Assembly: GCA_029953675.1 (NCBI GenBank)
Contig: JAMWBK010000005.1
Span: 434,001-498,000 of the forward strand
DNA from: Rhodosorus marinus CCMP1338
Lineage: Eukaryota > Plantae > Rhodophyta
DNA length: 64,000 bases
Direction: 5' to 3'
The notes under the pieces were generated by a model. It did no database searches and was not told the DNA's origin. It saw only the letters and a list, made by a program, of their open reading frames with translations. Below are positions 18,440 to 30,060 of this stretch, one piece after another. The first letter of the stretch is position 1; each line of letters starts with the position of its first letter. The position numbers were made by a program, and so were the translations under genes.

Positions 18440-18920
18440 TATAGCTATGGCCCTTCCTTCATCGAGTCCTTAGGGGACCGATGCGAATATCAAGTCTTAT
18501 CGTTGGATTTAATCGTTAGCCTACCTCTAGCTACGGAAGGCTATGACTCCGTTTTGGACATCGGACTCACGAAAGATGCATGGTTTATCCCGACGAGAAC
18601 GTCTCGACCGCTACCGGCCGAAAAAGTTGCCCCCCCGTTCTTGAACCAGTGTGTCCATTTTGCGGGAGTTCCCCTCAACTTTGTATCAGATCGAGAACCC
18701 AGATTGCACACGAGTAAACGCCGTGAACAGATGTCTTCTCATCCGCGACAAGCATCTCGTCAACCCATCAAACAATTCTTCCCGACTCTCGGAATTTGCT
18801 TCCTGTCCACTTAATAAATTGCTTTCCCTGTTGCCTTTCCGACAATCAAAAGGTACGTCACCTGGCGTTCCCGAGTCATCCCTGACCTCAGTACTCTCCA
18901 GGCCCGTTCGAGCTTAACTT
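18440..18920 (+). mobile_element. decayed Ty3/Gypsy integrase relic
   Basis: SLDLIVSLPLATEGYDSV...LTKDAWFIPT...EKVA..F...GVPLNFVSDREPRL...SSHP parallels the Gypsy integrase pattern (MDF..LP..GYD..D.LTK..HFIP, G.P..IVSDRD.RF, AYHPQ). Contains stops and frameshifts. Confidence 0.75.
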
Positions 18921-20145
18921 CCGAATTTGAGATAGGATCGGGTGCGTGTTCGAGAGGTATGAACGTATCTCCAAGCTTAGCGTTCTAAACAAGAATTTAA
19001 AGCTCGCTTCGTACCCCGTTTAATGTCCCATTGGATTCGTCGACAGCTGTTGAACCCAAGCAAACTATTACCATTTAATTGCTCTCAGAAACTACCGAAA
19101 TACAAGGATCAATTTTCGGGCTGTTCCGGGGAGGCCGGCGGGGAACTGCTTTCATCCATTTTCGTCGTTTTGTTACCTAGTTTTCTTTTGCTTAAAGGTT
19201 TTTGTACGCTTCTAATACGGTGTACACTTTTTACACTTTTTCTTCTTTATGTGGTGCCCTTTCGGCTGGGAGTGCCGCCCACTGATGTAAAAGCGGGGAT
19301 TCGATCCCACGACTTCAGATAAGAAAATGACTTTTAAGCATGCTCATGGTCGATCCCTGTTTGGAAGCTTTCCTAGCCATCTGCGTGCTCGATGTGACCG
19401 GGGAGAGGGCGCGATGAACGAGCAAATACAGGGCACAAGGGAGGAAGATGCGGAAAGCACATGATCCCTCGTGAAGGCGACTCTGCAAGCAAGAACTCAA
19501 CGATGCCGAGAATTGTAGATCGGGCGGCGACTAGCAATAGATCGCTTTGATTGCGAAACTCCAACTTTATCTATCTTGGCGGATAGCCAAGATTCACGTC
19601 ATTCAACAGCTCACCTCTTCAGTCAACAAATCAAAAATGACTACATATCAGTCCATTTCACCACCCGAAGAAGTCTTATTTATTCTTAAAAAATGTGAAC
19701 GTGTGGCCGGAGTTATGAAAATTTCTGAAATGTGTGAGCTGCCGTTTTTTCTTTTTCTCTAGAAAAAGCCTACGTTTTTGAACTTGAAATTTTCAAAGTC
19801 CTAACACATTTTACTCCTATTTTTACGCCCCGTATGGAAGATCTAAAGTTCAGTCAAGTAATTTCTGGAAGTTATCTTTTTTAAATATATTGTATTCATG
19901 AATTGGGCTGGGAGGGGTTAAAAGTTTTTTTTCGGCATATTGCTCAGGACTTTGGCGTTAGGAGTGCGATAGGGTTGGGGGGATGGATTGGTGAATTGTA
20001 GTAGTCGATGACGTTGTAGCCATTCCAACGGAGAGGTAAGGGTCTTGTTGCTGGTGGTAGGACATTAGGAGCGGTGGTTCGGATTGAATTCTGCTCAGGA
20101 GGAGGGTGAGTGAACTTCCCCAACCGACGAGAGTTCGGGAACGAA

Positions 20146-21546: not shown

Positions 21547-22059
21547 CTACCCCAGCGCCTTCATGTGTTCCTCAGGGAGATCGTCACTAGCTGAAATCAT
21601 CTTAAAGTATCCGACTGGAAAATCTCTAAGAATTAGCTTTCCTTCAAAGTTAATTAGTTCCTCATCCTTCGACATCGACATCTCTCCGTCGTAGGTACGT
21701 TTCACTTCATAATCACCCGTATCTTGCTCAAACGTTCTCGTCAACTTCATCATGAACCGATTATTCTTCGGGTCAAGATCCCACTCCCCAGACGCCAACT
21801 TGGGTATGGGACCAGTCGTGTTACCGCAGTCCACCGTCCCGTCACGATTCAAATAAAGCGCTGTCGTAGTCGAGTCCTTATCCTCCAACTCATCCAACTG
21901 ATAGGACTTGTTCCAGATACGTTCTCTATCCAGACTAGCCACAACCACAGTCACGCGGCCACCAATCTCCCTCGAAGACTTTACAAACCCACGCACCGCT
22001 CTCTCCGAGGATATCCGATTGCTCCTCCCAACACCTCCAAACCCAGAAACGAACGCCAT
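21547..22059 (-). CDS. plastid-targeted hypothetical protein (170 aa)
   Basis: Intronless ORF with MAFVSGFGG...RVTVVVA transit peptide and a beta-rich mature part. Confidence 0.8.
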   Translation of the reverse strand: MAFVSGFGGVGRSNRISSERAVRGFVKSSREIGGRVTVVVASLDRERIWNKSYQLDELEDKDSTTTALYLNRDGTVDCGNTTGPIPKLASGEWDLDPKNNRFMMKLTRTFEQDTGDYEVKRTYDGEMSMSKDEELINFEGKLILRDFPVGYFKMISASDDLPEEHMKALG

Positions 22060-24734
22060 CTAAAACCCTCCCCAAAATCCAAACACACTCCTAACCTAAA
22101 GATCCTTTACTTTTATCAACACTATTAAAAAAAACAGAAAACAAAACCCACTCTCTAACTCCAATCCTTTCCACAATCCAAAAGTCTTCTCAGGAAGCTT
22201 ACCGCCTTTAACGCCCACCCTCCCCAACACCAAACTAAAACTCAAATTAAAACAATCAATTCCCCCCCCCGCCAACCACCGAAAAACGTCTTCTCTTCCC
22301 AACAAAATCAGATATATCCACAAAAGGCCACCAAAATATCACAAAATCCTCTATATTGCCATTCAATAAAAAAAAACCACTTTTTCAGATTCGATCTTTT
22401 TTCATACAAACCAGATCTTAAACTTTCAATTAGTTCATAGGGAGGGGGGTTATGGTTTTTCATGCAATTATTTAACTAAATATGTACCCCTAACAATAAA
22501 ATTAGAGTGTAGTTATTATTTTAGTAAACAATAACTACGAAACTTATAGGGGTGTCACAGTTTTTGCTCTTTTAGAGTTTGGGAGTTTTTTTTTTGTACA
22601 AAGGGTATGGACTCTACTTTCTTTGTTGGGATTTATGCTGTGGCCGGTGGGATAAACGGGGTTTTATGTTTTTCGGAATAGTTTTGATCGTTTTTGTTGT
22701 TGATGGGGTGGGAGGTGAGAGTGGTCTTCGCATCGCGGTGGTTGGTTTTTTAGTTAGCCTTTACAAAGGGCTACGGCAGGGCATGATACAAGCTGGGAAC
22801 GAGGAACGAAAGCGTTCAATCCAAGGGTGCGGTAGCGAGCCTCGGCTGACATGCTGCTAGAATATCACCTTAAAGCGACACTGAGTCTCGTAGTTTGATG
22901 AAGCAGGTCTGGATAGAAAGAAGGTAAATACGTCGAGTTCTGTGGCGCTAATGATTCTGGAAATATACTGTTGATGTTCAGTTAAGCTCAATTGAGCTGG
23001 AAAATTTGTCTCCCGCTCATGAAATCAGGAGGCTTTCGAGTTTGTTTGGATCGATCGTCGATGAGTCGGTCACTGGTTATCCTCTTGGTGAGGTTGGATC
23101 TGTATTGAGGTTTGTTGGGTCTGCGTATGATATGAGAGTGATGAACTCCCGAGGCCATCAGGATAGATCTGGACACTCTATCGGTATGGTCGCTCTACTT
23201 ATTCTGTTGAGAGAGCTTGTTGTGGAGAAACCATGCAAAGTGCTGGCTCGATTGGTTGGCCTCTTGCCTGTTCGTGTGCTTGTTTCAGATTCTATCTTTA
23301 TGGACTACGAATGTTGAGAATAGTAGGGCTCTTTCGTTCGCCGTCGCTGATCAACTCGGTTTTAGACGAAACATTCACGTTCGCCAGGATGCTTTTGAAC
23401 GCTCCAATTCTAATGACCAGCAGATTACGGACTTGAGAACATCTTCTCCCTGTGGCTGTCACCTTCGAAGGGAGAAGCAAAATATCCGTTGACGCTTCAG
23501 CGAGGATACAAGCAATCTGTGATCGACATCTGGCTTCACGCCGTCCTCTCCGTGCCGTTCTCGAATTCAATTTTGCAACCAAGCTTTGTCTCTGTCAAGG
23601 GATTCAGGCGGGTCTAGCCCACGGTCACGTCGCCTTGCTCATCGGAACAAGGGAGATGATTCTGCCTGCAACTCGTGAACTCCGCGAAGTGTACCCCAGG
23701 GTCTTATCATCATCATCATGCGTTTATTCAGGGCCTACCTACCCTGAAGAGCGTCCAACAACAAAGCAGGTAAAAGGGCCAGAGTGTCAGAGACAACTCC
23801 GTGAGGAGGCTGTCAACCGCTGCAGGCATTTCGAAAAACACCTTATCCGGGCGCTGGATACAACTACTATCAAAAATACTAGAGTCCAGACTTCAGAATC
23901 ACAGCGACCCAAATGCGCTCAGCAGCTAACCTATGTCTGCTAAGATTTCGAAGCGAGTGGGTCAAAGGCGTCAACCGCCCAGCGTCGTGGTAGACCTCGC
24001 CACATGCACCACTGTACGGACCACTACACGTCGATCGTCAACCCCAGGGCGCCGATTTTTTGGGAAGAACTTTCCGGACTTCGTTGTCCGGATAATACCA
24101 TACAAAGGACTCCAGAAAGAGATAAGACCCCTTAACGACGAAACTCCGAAGCAACCGAGCTCTCCGAACTATTCAACTATTTCATCAATGCTAAAATTAG
24201 CATATCTGTTTACATACAAAGAGAATTTAATGAAAATATGAATAGAACGGACTGCCACAGAATCCCCGCACTACTAAAAATGGACAACGGAAGTGAGACA
24301 TGGTCGGGTGTTGCATATCTTCAAATTTTGGCAATTTTCAATTAAGCCCCAAGAGACGATCTATTTTCGTCTTCGTGTCAATAAACTCCATTTGGACGGT
24401 TGGGAAGTGGTAAATTGGTGGATTAAATCAGATGGTTTTTGGTTTACGGTCTCTTGGCTACCTTTTGCCTGAACTGCCCGCTCCATGACGAGGCGGTAGA
24501 AGTGCTGACGTCCCGGGGCAAAGCTCATTGTTCGTGAACTAGCGACGTTTGCCTGCATCTTCTGTAGCACAAAGAGGAGCCCGAAAGGTACTTAAGGGTT
24601 GCTTGAGTGTTGATGAGTAGGATGTGTAGAGAGATGACCAACAACAAGCAAACAGAGAGAGAGATAGAGAGAGTTCTGAGACTGAGAAATAACGGGAAAC
24701 AAAAAAGTTGTTTATTTGTCAATACTATTCGAAA

Positions 24735-25022
24735 ATGTCGAGCAAAGTTGTCAGAAGCAATCCGGTGAAGGCGTTCTTCAAGGCCGCTAACGGGGCCTCG
24801 GAGAGGAAGGCTACGAACATCGCGGAGAAGAGAGCTAACAACAAGAATATCGTGGCGTTCAACGGCGGCATGCCCCGTGCTTATAGTAACATGCCTGTTT
24901 GCAGCGCGAAGGACACCGCGAAGAGCATCGGAGAGAAGCGAGCCGACGCCCTGAACATCGTTGACTATTCCGCGGTTAGGCGGTCACATCAGCCAGTTAA
25001 GGTTGTCGAGGAGATGTGGTGA
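24735..25022 (+). CDS. small basic repeat protein, paralog 1 (95 aa), unknown family
   Basis: Clear homology to the ORFs at 27258 and 29224. Doubled IxEKRAxxxNIVx(F/Y) motif; C-terminus KVVEEMW. Confidence 0.85.
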   Translation: MSSKVVRSNPVKAFFKAANGASERKATNIAEKRANNKNIVAFNGGMPRAYSNMPVCSAKDTAKSIGEKRADALNIVDYSAVRRSHQPVKVVEEMW

Positions 25023-26318
25023 ACAGCTAAAAGTGTAAAGTCTGGAGCCTAGGGCTCCAATCAATGTACAATTGTGAATGAGTGCCTTTGCACTGAAACG
25101 AAAAAGTGTCGTCCTACAGTTTTGGAGGGAATAATGCCCTCGTGGGAATATAAATTACGACTTTCGTTTAGATTTTTTTTTTGTGTCCCAAACGTTCTGA
25201 GTGTGAAATTTCAGTGATAATTTCGTGAATCATAGTATCGCTAGCTGCACTCAATGGTCAAAATAGTGTGCCGACTCAGGGGCAAAGCCCCCGCGTCGAG
25301 GAGATCACAGGTATTGAGCCACAGTGATTTGAGGCCACTGGGAGCGCCACAGAAAGAAGTCGGGGCATAGAACACAGAGCAAATAAAAGAACGGAGATTC
25401 TTTGGGTGTAAATTGTGACTACAGGTGATGTCCCTGCGTATGATTTGGACTGCTCGTGGCATAGTTTCGGTGGGTTTCATCCTGCTCTCGGTAAACTTCC
25501 GTGTTCCTGGGCTATAAGAGATGGAGTTCTACGCTGGGTACTAAATCTCGCCCTGCCAAATAAAAATCGCTCACCTCGGAGAACCGGCAATTAATCTCCG
25601 CAATCCATTCATCTCTATGCCCTTTCCTAGTAGTGAGGAGTAGTCGAAAACACAATCACAGGGTAATCAGAGTTTTGTCGTTTGTGCAATGCCGTCCACC
25701 GCGCGACAACGGCTCTCGATGCTCAGCAACATCCGAGTTGCGATGTCCAGCAAATCAACTTCAAAACAAACATTTCTTTCGCATATGAAAACAACAATGG
25801 CTTCGTGAAGCGGTCGGCGATCGCCCCGATCCTCTGCTCACTGTTTACAAGCTGTCTGGTGTTATGTTTCTGTAAGCCGCGCCCTCCTCCACTTCGCCTG
25901 GAGAAATGTATTTCTTGTATTTTCAAGAAATAGGTTTTTTGTAGAAATAGGCTCAGAATGTTTCAGAAATCTGGGTTCGTTCCAATATATTTTAAGAAAA
26001 TAGATAGCAACACGAAAGCAGTTTTGTGGACATTTCTCCTTCAAGAATAATCGCTCTTGGTGACTGGAGAAATGGGGACCCTAGCTGATCCAACGCTGAA
26101 AAGCGTGATTGGCAAACCTAGTTGCAGTAGTATAACTTAATTTTAATCACAATCTAGAAAGAGGAACCCCTTTGTTAGCACCATGCACCGACACCATCTT
26201 GCAAGTCGGAAGGTTTTCGATGGGTTACAGTTAACAAGTGTCAGTCTGACAGTCCCATGGACAAAGGTAGTTTCATTCAATCTATTCAACAATGGAGTTT
26301 CTTGGTGGGCAGATCGGC

Positions 26319-26543
26319 TCATCTACAGCGAGTCGAACTTAGTTTAGCCCTTTGACGGGGGACAAGTGCTACTATTCTCGAGGTTCGATAATTGCGTCGC
26401 TCGTAATCCTGGCTCCTCTGTGTGACTAGCTCTGGAATAAAGTCCATCCCAGTACAGTGGTAAATATTTGCTGGTACTGGCTTGTTGTTCGGAAGGGAGA
26501 AGCGCTCGAAAATGGAGGTTTGGACACGCTGTCGTTTAGTCAC
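26319..26543 (-). mobile_element. decayed Gypsy integrase relic
   Basis: LPNNKPVPANIYHCTGMDFIPEL resembles the L.PLPVP..PW..ISMDFI..LP entry into the Gypsy integrase core. Confidence 0.4.
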
Positions 26544-27257
26544 GTCAAGGTTGAAAGTCTAAACCATCATTCCCAACCGCAATGTTGCAACCGTATGTTT
26601 TCGAACGGGACAGACGACAGCTGAGAACAATTTTCATCTGGCTGTTGTCTTATTCGAAAACATGCCGGTTGCGGTATTGGGGTTCGGAACGATGATTACA
26701 CTTGAGTCTCCCTCATCAACGTGCAGCAGTCCCACCAATGAGCCTCATATTCTCAAACGGATGTGCAAGTATTAGAAAAGCGGCCATCGCCCTGAAACAG
26801 AATCAATGGCTCAAAATTTATAACTATATGAATCAGCACCGTCATGCCCAAATATTATATTGCGTGGAAAAAACCCATCCAGGCGAAAAGCATGGAAAAT
26901 CGATGTACACTATAGTACAAATACATGTTTACTTCAAGAAAATACAAGCCGAACACCAGTTTTACAAGGAGTGAAACTCCCGAATTCTAAGGAACTTACC
27001 CATTGAAGTTGTTTCATTCAGAGCCGGTTGCTTACCGGTTCCGATCGGGGACGTCAGGAGCTAGGTACTGAAAGTAAGCACGAGGTTACTCGCCTTTCAA
27101 CTATCGGAAATATTGGGCGGCTACGAAGACTATAAGAGTGTGGTTTGCTGAACATGGTGGTTGAGGAGTTGGAGTGGACAATAATCAGTTAAGGAAAAGA
27201 AGTGATATAGAGAGGCTTAGAATACAAGTTGAAAAGCGTTTGTTTGGAGAAGTCATA

Positions 27258-27563
27258 ATGAAGATGTCTGACAAAGATGGGAAGAGCAATATCATCGTCC
27301 GTGGACTGAAGGGATCATGGAGAGCCTTTGATGACTGGTCCGATAAGAGGGCTGTTAGCATTGGAGAAAAGAGAGCAAACAACAGGAACATCGTGAACTT
27401 CACTGGAAACGAGAGAGCTGAGATGTACACGAACTGGCCATTGCGGACTGGGAAGAGCAGCAGGGCCCAACGTATTGGGGAGAAACGCGCGGATGCCCTG
27501 AACATTGTGGACTACTCTAGGCCTGTACAGATGCCTATCAAGGTCGTTGAGGAGGCTTGGTAA
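27258..27563 (+). CDS. small basic repeat protein, paralog 2 (99-101 aa), unknown family
   Basis: Contains SIGEKRANNRNIVNFT and RIGEKRADALNIVDYS; ends KVVEEAW. ATGs at 27258 and 27264; TATAAG at 27131. Confidence 0.87.
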   Translation: MKMSDKDGKSNIIVRGLKGSWRAFDDWSDKRAVSIGEKRANNRNIVNFTGNERAEMYTNWPLRTGKSSRAQRIGEKRADALNIVDYSRPVQMPIKVVEEAW

Positions 27564-28654
27564 AACGAAGGTGGTGGAAAAAGGTTACTAACTACAGCCA
27601 CAACGCTGGCCTGAACATAAAATCTTCTATCAAAAATTTGAAAGTATAGCGCATGTCTAAGAACTGCATATAAATAAACAATCGAGTTTTTCTTATGAAA
27701 ACAATCGGAACGACTACAATGCTCAAGGTCGACAAACCGACTGTAGGCCAAGTCCTCTCAAATGGCCCTCTAAATAGTACACAGGATTTCAACACCAGAG
27801 CATGTGGACCCATGCTCAGATAAATGCCGACATTCCTTGTGAACAGATCAGAACGCCGCGAGGGTTTGTCTGTTGGTGATGACTCGGTCCTCGAATGTAC
27901 GACTCAATTTTTATCGTTTATTTACTTCGAGCTTAAGGTATAAATAGGATGAGGCCCACTCAACAGGAATGCAGGAAGAACCTTGCTAGGTGCAAAACTT
28001 GATTTCGCCCTATTTCGTACCAACGCCCGCAATTGATCCTATACTGCTGAAGCGAACTTTGTATGAACGGAACGTTCGCCCTCCGTAGCGCTTAAGACTA
28101 TGGTAGCAAATCCACCACTGTAGATTCTGGCCGGCTTTGAAATGAAGCAGTGGGACGAGTCTACCAGTTCGTCAACTCTCCTAGAATGGGTTTTAAGATT
28201 TGTGTCCGGCTTGCCCAAGCTGTGGAAAACTAAAGAAACCATTGCAGGGTTCAATGCGTGTGCAAAAGACTTCATCAGCGTGTTCTACTCAACCCTTCAT
28301 AAAATTTTCGTCGCATACTCAATCCTCGCAGAAAAATCCAAAAGGAAAGTGTAATTCAATCATTTCTAGAGCGCAGCACAGAACAACCGAAAGTGTGTTT
28401 CAAACGGGTTGTCGGCCCCTAGCTCGCTTGTCCCAAAACGAACTTAAGCAAACAGCCCTAGTCCGAAGGTCGCTCCTGCTTTGTGGAAAACTGGTTTAAC
28501 CATTCACCACATTCGGAGTGGTACCTCCACGTCCTTGAACTACAAATATAGACCTCTGGAGAAGGAACCCGACAGCACCGGCAGTTTCCATAATGAGATA
28601 CTAATAATCAAATGAAGTCTCCCATAAAACGGACAAAAAAACTGCTAGGTCCTG

Positions 28655-28686
28655 ACGGTAAAGCTCCACCACGGTAAAGCTCCACC
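28655..28686. repeat. perfect 16-bp direct tandem duplication (ACGGTAAAGCTCCACC)x2
   Basis: Read directly. Confidence 0.9.
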
Positions 28687-28789
28687 AAGCAAAATGTACA
28701 CTGACTACATATTTTGAAAATAACTAGATCGAGGACCGCTGCTTATCATATTTTAGAAATCGTATCATATAAACGCTACAATTTTTCAC

Positions 28790-29026
28790 TTAAATACTCA
28801 AAATATCAATATCTTTACGTATTAGCTTCCCCCACGTACCATGTTTTAGATAATTTTCCCATATAGTATCCGTTTTTCGAATATTTTCAACCATCAGACC
28901 GGTTTCTATGTCGACAAATATGAGTCTATTGTGTAAGGAAGTTTCTACTCCACGTTTTACGAATTCAGCTTTTGCAGAAGAAAAAACTACAACAGTTTTC
29001 AGGCTACTGTCAGGACTTTGGTACAC
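28790..29026 (-). mobile_element. possible Ty1/Copia RNase H relic
   Basis: KTVVVFSSAKAEFV resembles the Copia RNase H motif Q..VA.SS.EAEY. The rest is poorly conserved. Confidence 0.3.
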
Positions 29027-29223
29027 ATCCGAGGCGACTCAGGGTTGAGGGTCTGTGCATGAGCAGTGCTTTGGAAGAGTATATAAACATGCTTGAGAGC
29101 AAGCGGATGATGGGTGAAGCACGATAGGCTCACTAAAGATCAATACACAGAGACAAGCAATAATCAGAAAGATAGAAAGCAGTTGAAGAGTTATTTTTTT
29201 GCGGGGGAAGAAAGGTAGTCAAG

Positions 29224-29520
29224 ATGTCGAGCAAAGTTGGAAAGAGCAACATCATCGTTCGCGGCCTGAAGGGAGTGGTGAGGAGTGTGGATCAGGCGTC
29301 TGAGAAGAGGGCTGTGAGCATTGGGGAGAAGAGAGCAAACAGCCGGAACGTGGTGAACTTCAGTGGAAATGGGAAGAATGAAATGTACAGCAACATGCCT
29401 ATGAAGTCTGGAAAGGACAGGGCTCGGAGCATTGGAGAGAAACGTGGTGACGCTCTCAACATTATGGACTACTCGAAACCAGCTGCGACGCCAGCGAAAG
29501 TTGTCCAAGAGGCGTGGTAA
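29224..29520 (+). CDS. small basic repeat protein, paralog 3 (98 aa), unknown family
   Basis: Contains SIGEKRANSRNVVNFS and SIGEKRGDALNIMDYS; ends KVVQEAW. TATATAAA at 29080. Confidence 0.87.
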   Translation: MSSKVGKSNIIVRGLKGVVRSVDQASEKRAVSIGEKRANSRNVVNFSGNGKNEMYSNMPMKSGKDRARSIGEKRGDALNIMDYSKPAATPAKVVQEAW

Positions 29521-30060
29521 TTGTAAAACTTGAACTGTTGTACCATGGGCTAATACGAAAACACAGGTTTGAGGTTGTTGTCTAAATTTTTGGATATGTG
29601 CGTAGACTCTCTGAACATAGAAATTTTGGTGAATAAAACAACTGCTTGTTGTGAAATTGGATGTGAATTGCTGTAACCTGCTCTCCAAGGGCGAATCAAA
29701 TCTGTTCAGTTGTAGTCGCGGTTAGTGGGTTGCGTACGTCTGTTGATCATAGGCAAGATGCAAGTGGATGGATTCTTGCTGGGTTAGTCAAATAGAATAT
29801 GTACATCTCCATCGGATTTCCACAATAGATTACTGTTCACGCTGAATTCCTTCTTTGCAAGTGCTTTATGCTGATGGGACGCTTTCCACTCTTAAACAAT
29901 TCCTAGAACATGCGTTTTTTTTATTTATACTATAGTAAGTTTGCAGGTCGAGCTTAGCTCGTCCTCGTAAGTTAGTTCTGTGACTGTAAACCTCTGGCCT
30001 ACTATTGCTTCGTATCAGCGGCTCATTCAGCCTATTTGTTTTTGGTATTCTGTACATACT

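Follow-up and report, generated by a model that had tools for sequence, protein, structure and literature searches.

What is the function of three small, closely related genes that lie in tandem in the nuclear genome of a red alga and encode proteins of no recognizable family? This question is raised by a 64,000 nucleotide (nt) stretch of Rhodosorus marinus CCMP1338 (positions 434,001 to 498,000 of the forward strand of the 3.19 Mb contig JAMWBK010000005.1, assembly GCA_029953675.1), hereafter called the window. R. marinus is a unicellular red alga of the class Stylonematophyceae, and the assembly represents its nuclear genome, which spans 31.2 Mb and contains 8392 genes and 24,821 introns (PMC10250338). 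A first-pass annotation, made from the letters of the window without database searches, had singled out the trio, here termed par1, par2 and par3, as same-strand intronless paralogs for small basic proteins with a doubled motif. It regarded them as the best candidate for an undescribed system, and suggested either a disordered bivalent linker or binding protein or a stress protein. Here we report that the trio consists of genuine and old genes that are under selection and are, at least in part, expressed. The explanation we favor, with a probability of about 0.35, is that the proteins are disordered and bind a partner at two equivalent sites.

Three tandem paralogs share an internally duplicated repeat

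All three genes are called in the GenBank assembly, and their arrangement is as first described: they are intronless, lie on the forward strand, and start 2523 nt (par1 to par2) and 1966 nt (par2 to par3) apart (Table 1). The proteins encoded in the window are 53–68% identical to each other, and tblastn comparisons of paralog against paralog gave E values of 1e-22 to 1e-42, a similarity far above chance. The tblastn search detected neither a fourth copy nor a recognizable pseudogene in the window. Weak matches in the 4 kb 3′ of par3 were considered as such a copy and dismissed as noise.

Each paralog contains two copies of the motif I[GA]EK[RK][AG]xxxN[IV][VM]x[FY]. The copies are spaced by 36, 38 and 37 residues in par1, par2 and par3 (108, 114 and 111 nt), in agreement with the 36–37 residues originally given for par1 and par3. 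All three proteins likewise have the Y(S/T)N(M/W)P linker and end in KVV(E/Q)E(A/M)W, and the lengths of the linkers vary among them. When the N- and C-terminal halves were compared by hhalign, the repeat proved to be longer than first described, covering the 20 columns [KR]RAxSIGEKRAxxxNIVx(F/Y)S (probability 96%, E = 3e-9). Because this profile–profile comparison aligns the two halves over 20 columns, it indicates that each protein arose by internal duplication of this 20-residue unit.

As had been pointed out, conserved residues of the repeat copies are written with different synonymous codons, which is visible for R (CGA/CGC/CGT), L (CTG/CTG/CTC) and S (TCC/TCT/TCG). I, E, A and N are invariant in all 12 repeat copies, and G, D, Y and W are also conserved. 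Since the conserved residues include non-basic ones, the constraint concerns specific contacts rather than merely charge or composition.

Database searches retrieve Rhodosorus sequences only

To find relatives outside Rhodosorus, a HMMER profile of the three proteins was searched exhaustively against 1.84 billion cluster representatives, a collection that includes MMETSP and EukProt, and it returned Rhodosorus sequences only. When a profile of six sequences was run through the word index of a collection of 5.8 billion proteins, 6087 candidates were scored, and those that reached E ≤ 10 were again all from Rhodosorus. Pattern matching followed by tblastn gave 572 pattern stretches in JGI metagenome contigs, 49 in IMG/VR and 98 in GTDB, the last scanned with one genome per prokaryotic species, and none of these was a relative.

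No Pfam-A family matched at its gathering score; the sole hits, LLGL (E = 0.16) and YkpC (E = 0.19), each concerned a single member and were far below the cut-off. Sequence and profile searches of the PDB also gave no match, the best being SeqA (E = 0.66), which vanished with the six-sequence profile, and a phage baseplate protein matched over 10 residues (E = 2). The UniProt entries for the members carry the name ‘Uncharacterized protein’ only, and literature searches with the UniProt accessions and the motif strings gave irrelevant matches only. Within the reach of sequence methods, the family is restricted to the genus Rhodosorus. At this level it is undescribed and new, and it fits no known family, which bears out the initial failure to recognize one.

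The proteins are under purifying selection and at least two types are transcribed

We estimated the ratio of nonsynonymous to synonymous substitution rates (dN/dS) by the Nei–Gojobori method (NG86). The ratio ranged from 0.12 to 0.15 in the four comparisons with estimable dS, which covered the paralogs and one ortholog. The ortholog is encoded at the par1 locus of another Rhodosorus, represented by the 1.5-kb Logan contig L002 (SRR32518360), and gave a dN/dS of 0.14 at a dS of 0.42. The ratio was 0.14 between par2 and par3 (dS 1.5) and 0.12 between par1 and par3 (dS saturated). For par1 against the other paralogs, dS was 3 or not computable. As the synonymous sites of the paralogs are at or near saturation, the duplications are old.

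The par1 coding sequence (CDS) is 88.5% identical to that of L002 without insertions or deletions (indels), and the flanks are 70–79% identical with many indels. The 33 differences between the two CDSs are distributed 7/7/19 over codon positions 1/2/3. The paralogous loci cannot be aligned outside the CDS. These results indicate purifying selection on the protein in all three genes, as the first-pass annotation had deduced from codon usage.

To compare conservation along the chain, we contrasted the two 14-residue motif cores plus the C-terminal heptad with the remaining chain by Fisher’s test. Among seven sequences, 15 of 35 columns were variable in the cores and C-terminus and 54 of 68 in the remainder (p = 3e-4). 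The contrast was also significant within the par2 ortholog group (p = 0.016).

Separately from the CDS, the 100 nt that directly follow the par1 stop codon share 88.9% identity with L002 (positions 855–955 of that contig), on par with the CDS. This segment may be a conserved element of the 3′ untranslated region (UTR).

Transcripts with a complete open reading frame (ORF), labeled ‘type:complete’, are present in the R. marinus data of MMETSP and EukProt. Two are of the par1 type (P0003 and P0005) and two of the par2 type (P0004, 92% identical, and P0006, 86% identical). Thus, the par1- and par2-type genes are transcribed in other strains. The split between par1 and par2 predates the divergence of those strains. 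No par3 ortholog was found in the transcript collections searched, MMETSP and EukProt included, and par3 is represented by an annotated gene model only. The expression check that had been proposed for the trio therefore came out positive for the par1 and par2 types and found nothing for par3. Two other outcomes that would have spoken against the initial reading, a match to a characterized family and a dN/dS near 1, did not occur, the ratio being far below 1.

One of the par1-type transcripts is aberrant. The 153-residue ORF of P0005 (MMETSP0315) has 57 extra upstream codons and a divergent C-terminus ending in QPERRRTEAIQ. If this extension truly belongs to the transcript, it implies a 5′UTR of at least ~170 nt in that strain. 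The deviant C-terminus is suggestive of an assembly error or a frameshift.

The proteins are small, basic and probably disordered

The six members for which these values were computed have molecular masses of ~10.4–11.6 kDa, isoelectric points (pI) of 10.1–11.3, net charges of +7 to +15, grand averages of hydropathy (GRAVY) of −0.52 to −0.95 and 0–1 Cys. In par1, par2 and par3, GRAVY is −0.52, −0.87 and −0.68, and the Gly content is 4.2, 6.9 and 9.2%, respectively. No hydrophobic segment of the signal type was detected, the highest 9-residue Kyte–Doolittle mean being 1.3, in line with the signal peptide having been reported as missing.

AlphaFold2 gave a mean predicted local distance difference test score (pLDDT) of 50.3 with an alignment of six sequences and 46.6 with a single sequence, and a predicted template modeling score (pTM) of 0.15 in both runs. 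The models contain no elements other than low-confidence helices that end inside the motifs. In addition, all three paralogs fall on the disordered side of the charge–hydropathy boundary. The suggestion that the proteins are disordered is therefore likely to be correct.

In most members, the N-terminal region (residues 1–22) contains no acidic residues and is predicted to form a strongly amphipathic basic helix, with a hydrophobic moment of 0.82–0.86 for residues 10–22 of par3. The N-terminus of par2 is exceptional in carrying D5 and D7. The first ~20 residues resemble a mitochondrial presequence and are a candidate for one.

The repeats may serve as duplicated binding elements

We propose that the free protein is largely disordered and that each repeat would act as a short recognition element, in which a basic, helix-prone half (RAxSIGEKRA) is followed by a hydrophobic, aromatic and strand-prone half (NIVxF/Y). 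These elements would be expected to fold upon contact with a partner. With two equivalent elements ~37 residues apart and an invariant C-terminal Trp as an extra anchor, one molecule could hold two equivalent sites, on a dimeric or symmetric partner or on two copies of a single partner, and could serve as a clamp, a bridge or a regulator. We favor such a bivalent binder because the 20-residue elements are duplicated and conserved, the linkers between them are variable, the chain is hydrophilic and of low fold confidence, and the terminal aromatic residue is invariant.

Several observations weigh against this proposal. Within the par1 ortholog group, conservation of the motifs does not significantly exceed that of the remainder (p = 0.6), so the whole chain appears to be constrained and not the motifs alone. 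The par1 protein lies close to the charge–hydropathy boundary (0.442 versus 0.447). The low AlphaFold2 confidence is weak evidence for disorder because the alignment is very shallow, and a small pseudo-symmetric fold could be compatible with it. Moreover, we know of no established short motif that fits both repeat copies, having considered RVxF, SILK, LxxIxE, PxIxIT, the MAPK D-motif, IQ, 1-8-14 calmodulin, the D-box, the PIP-box, SIM and LIR.

The nearest functional analogy to the proposed binder is CP12, a small disordered protein that links GAPDH and PRK in phototrophs. Both are short chains of ~80–100 residues from photosynthetic organisms, CP12 being largely disordered and the Rhodosorus proteins probably so, and the proposed binder would, like CP12, combine two separate binding elements. 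The likeness is limited to this analogy, as every testable feature that defines CP12 is absent from the Rhodosorus family. The sequences are unrelated, and the Pfam profile of CP12 gave no match; the defining Cys pairs are lacking, with at most one Cys per protein; and the AWD_VEEL core is not found in the alignment. Furthermore, the Rhodosorus proteins are strongly basic, which CP12 is not known to be, and their two elements are duplicates of each other, whereas those of CP12 are dissimilar.

Alternative explanations

The second explanation, a small basic protein with affinity for nucleic acids or the ribosome, possibly in an organelle, appears rather unlikely to us. Its helices would contact phosphate backbones, and F, Y and W would stack on bases, which would suit the pI, the net charge and the basic helices predicted at low confidence. 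The amphipathic segment of par3 and the absence of acidic residues from the N-terminal ~20 positions in most members would suit an organellar location. The conserved positions, however, include E, D, G, N and I/V besides K/R, and the Pfam and PDB searches gave no match to a known nucleic-acid-binding family. The two Asp within the first seven residues of par2 are atypical of a presequence and argue against the organellar version.

Unlikely to a somewhat greater degree is a small folded domain with internal pseudo-symmetry, in which the two helix-plus-strand repeats, the N-terminal NIIV and KVVEEAW would pack together, possibly upon oligomerization only. In this case the regular alternation of hydrophobic stretches (NIIV, NIVNF, NIVDY and KVVEEAW) with helix-prone basic stretches, the constraint on the entire chain within ortholog groups and the orthologous CDSs without indels would all be expected. 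Neither AlphaFold2 run produced tertiary packing (pTM 0.15), the hydropathy of the six members computed is low (GRAVY −0.5 to −0.95), and the linkers differ in length among paralogs, all of which speak against a compact fold.

The alternative offered at the outset, an LEA- or hydrophilin-like stress protectant that acts through bulk physicochemical properties, fared poorly and is improbable. The family does resemble such proteins in being small, hydrophilic, repeat-containing, probably disordered and encoded in tandem. Hydrophilins are said to have a mean hydrophilicity above 1 (GRAVY below about −1) and a Gly content above 6%. The paralogs in the window, with GRAVY of −0.52 to −0.87 and Gly of 4.2–9.2%, do not combine these two properties, and no LEA, dehydrin, SMP or KGG family of Pfam matched even at E ≤ 10. 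Conservation of the repeat is position-specific and not compositional; it holds residue by residue and includes hydrophobic and aromatic positions.

A more speculative variant starts from the mitochondrial genome of the R. marinus lineage, which is unusual in being minicircular and of very high copy number (PMC10250338). The proteins might be imported into mitochondria by way of their presequence-like N-termini and act as a nucleoid or minicircle-maintenance factor specific to Rhodosorus or Stylonematophyceae, the two basic repeats binding a repeated or symmetric minicircle element, and we consider this very improbable. Finally, that the genes are spurious or decaying ORFs without function would agree with the distribution limited to the genus and with the missing par3 transcript, but is hardly credible in view of a dN/dS of ~0.14 over saturated dS, reading frames preserved in three or more strains or species, the existence of complete transcripts and the lack of indels.

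If the bivalent binder is real, the trio would be a clean case of a short recognition element giving rise, by duplication, to a young lineage-specific protein that is kept under strong selection, and would be useful for studying the origin of new binding proteins. With its 8392 genes, the compact genome would keep the hunt for a partner manageable (PMC10250338). The trio shares with other eukaryotic orphan tandem families that it is limited to a genus, small, intronless and arranged in tandem, with no homolog detectable elsewhere. It differs from many of them, which are weakly constrained, in its clear and old purifying selection, and also in its well-defined internal duplication. Since small tandem genes confined to a single genus are a common feature of eukaryotic genomes, the trio should interest specialists without surprising them.

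Genomic context of the trio

The newness of the trio concerns the sequence family only and gives no indication of a new kind of biological system. The first-pass annotation was thus right about an undescribed family but not about a system, as this is an orphan gene family without functionally linked neighbors, and nothing nearby suggests a multi-gene arrangement. Other genes of the window are ordinary eukaryotic housekeeping genes, encoding an IPP transferase, a RabGAP-TBC protein, an SNase-domain protein, a GOST seven-transmembrane protein, an ABC-F protein, a Bin3 methyltransferase, FANCL and a protein with a MutL C-terminal domain.

Table 1. Coordinates of the trio and of nearby features in the window
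Feature	Position	Strand	Sequence	Remark
par1 CDS	24735..25022	+		95 aa (P0007), intronless, stop codon included; called gene of GenBank assembly
par1 motif copy 1	24819..24860	+	IAEKRANNKNIVAF	
par1 motif copy 2	24927..24968	+	IGEKRADALNIVDY	
par1 C-terminus	24999..25019	+		KVVEEMW
First 100 nt after par1 stop	25023-25122	+		
par2 CDS	27258..27563	+		101 aa (P0002), intronless; called gene of GenBank assembly
par2 motif copy 1	27360..27401	+	IGEKRANNRNIVNF	
par2 motif copy 2	27474..27515	+	IGEKRADALNIVDY	
par2 C-terminus	27540..27560	+		KVVEEAW
par3 CDS	29224..29520	+		98 aa (P0001), intronless; called gene of GenBank assembly
par3 motif copy 1	29320..29361	+	IGEKRANSRNVVNF	
par3 motif copy 2	29431..29472	+	IGEKRGDALNIMDY	
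par3 C-terminus	29497..29517	+		KVVQEAW
GA-rich element	~24658-24669, 27201-27212, 29166-29177	+	AGAGATAGAGAG	shared 12-mer
Antisense ORF over par2	27185-27505	−		106 aa
Antisense ORF over par3	29191-29688	−		165 aa
5S rRNA gene	18850-18970	−		Rfam RF00001, 77.9 bits, full length
Gene with MAFVSGFGG start	21547-22059	−		170 aa; called gene

The upstream regions of the paralogs share four 12-mers, compared with 0.27 expected from mononucleotide shuffles. Among these, the GA-rich element AGAGATAGAGAG recurs with at most two mismatches 55–77 nt upstream of the ATG in all three paralogs. Its significance is doubtful because it is of low complexity, and beyond it no shared promoter motif was found upstream of the trio. 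Two ORFs overlap par2 and par3 in antisense orientation. We rejected them as genes because par1 has no counterpart of at least 50 aa, and they probably arose as a side effect of sense-frame composition.

Two further features lie upstream of the trio. The called gene for a 170-residue protein has no Pfam family among the precomputed matches, and the start of its product, MAFVSGFGG, resembles a red-algal plastid transit peptide. A full-length 5S rRNA gene is located ~6 kb upstream of the trio on the reverse strand.

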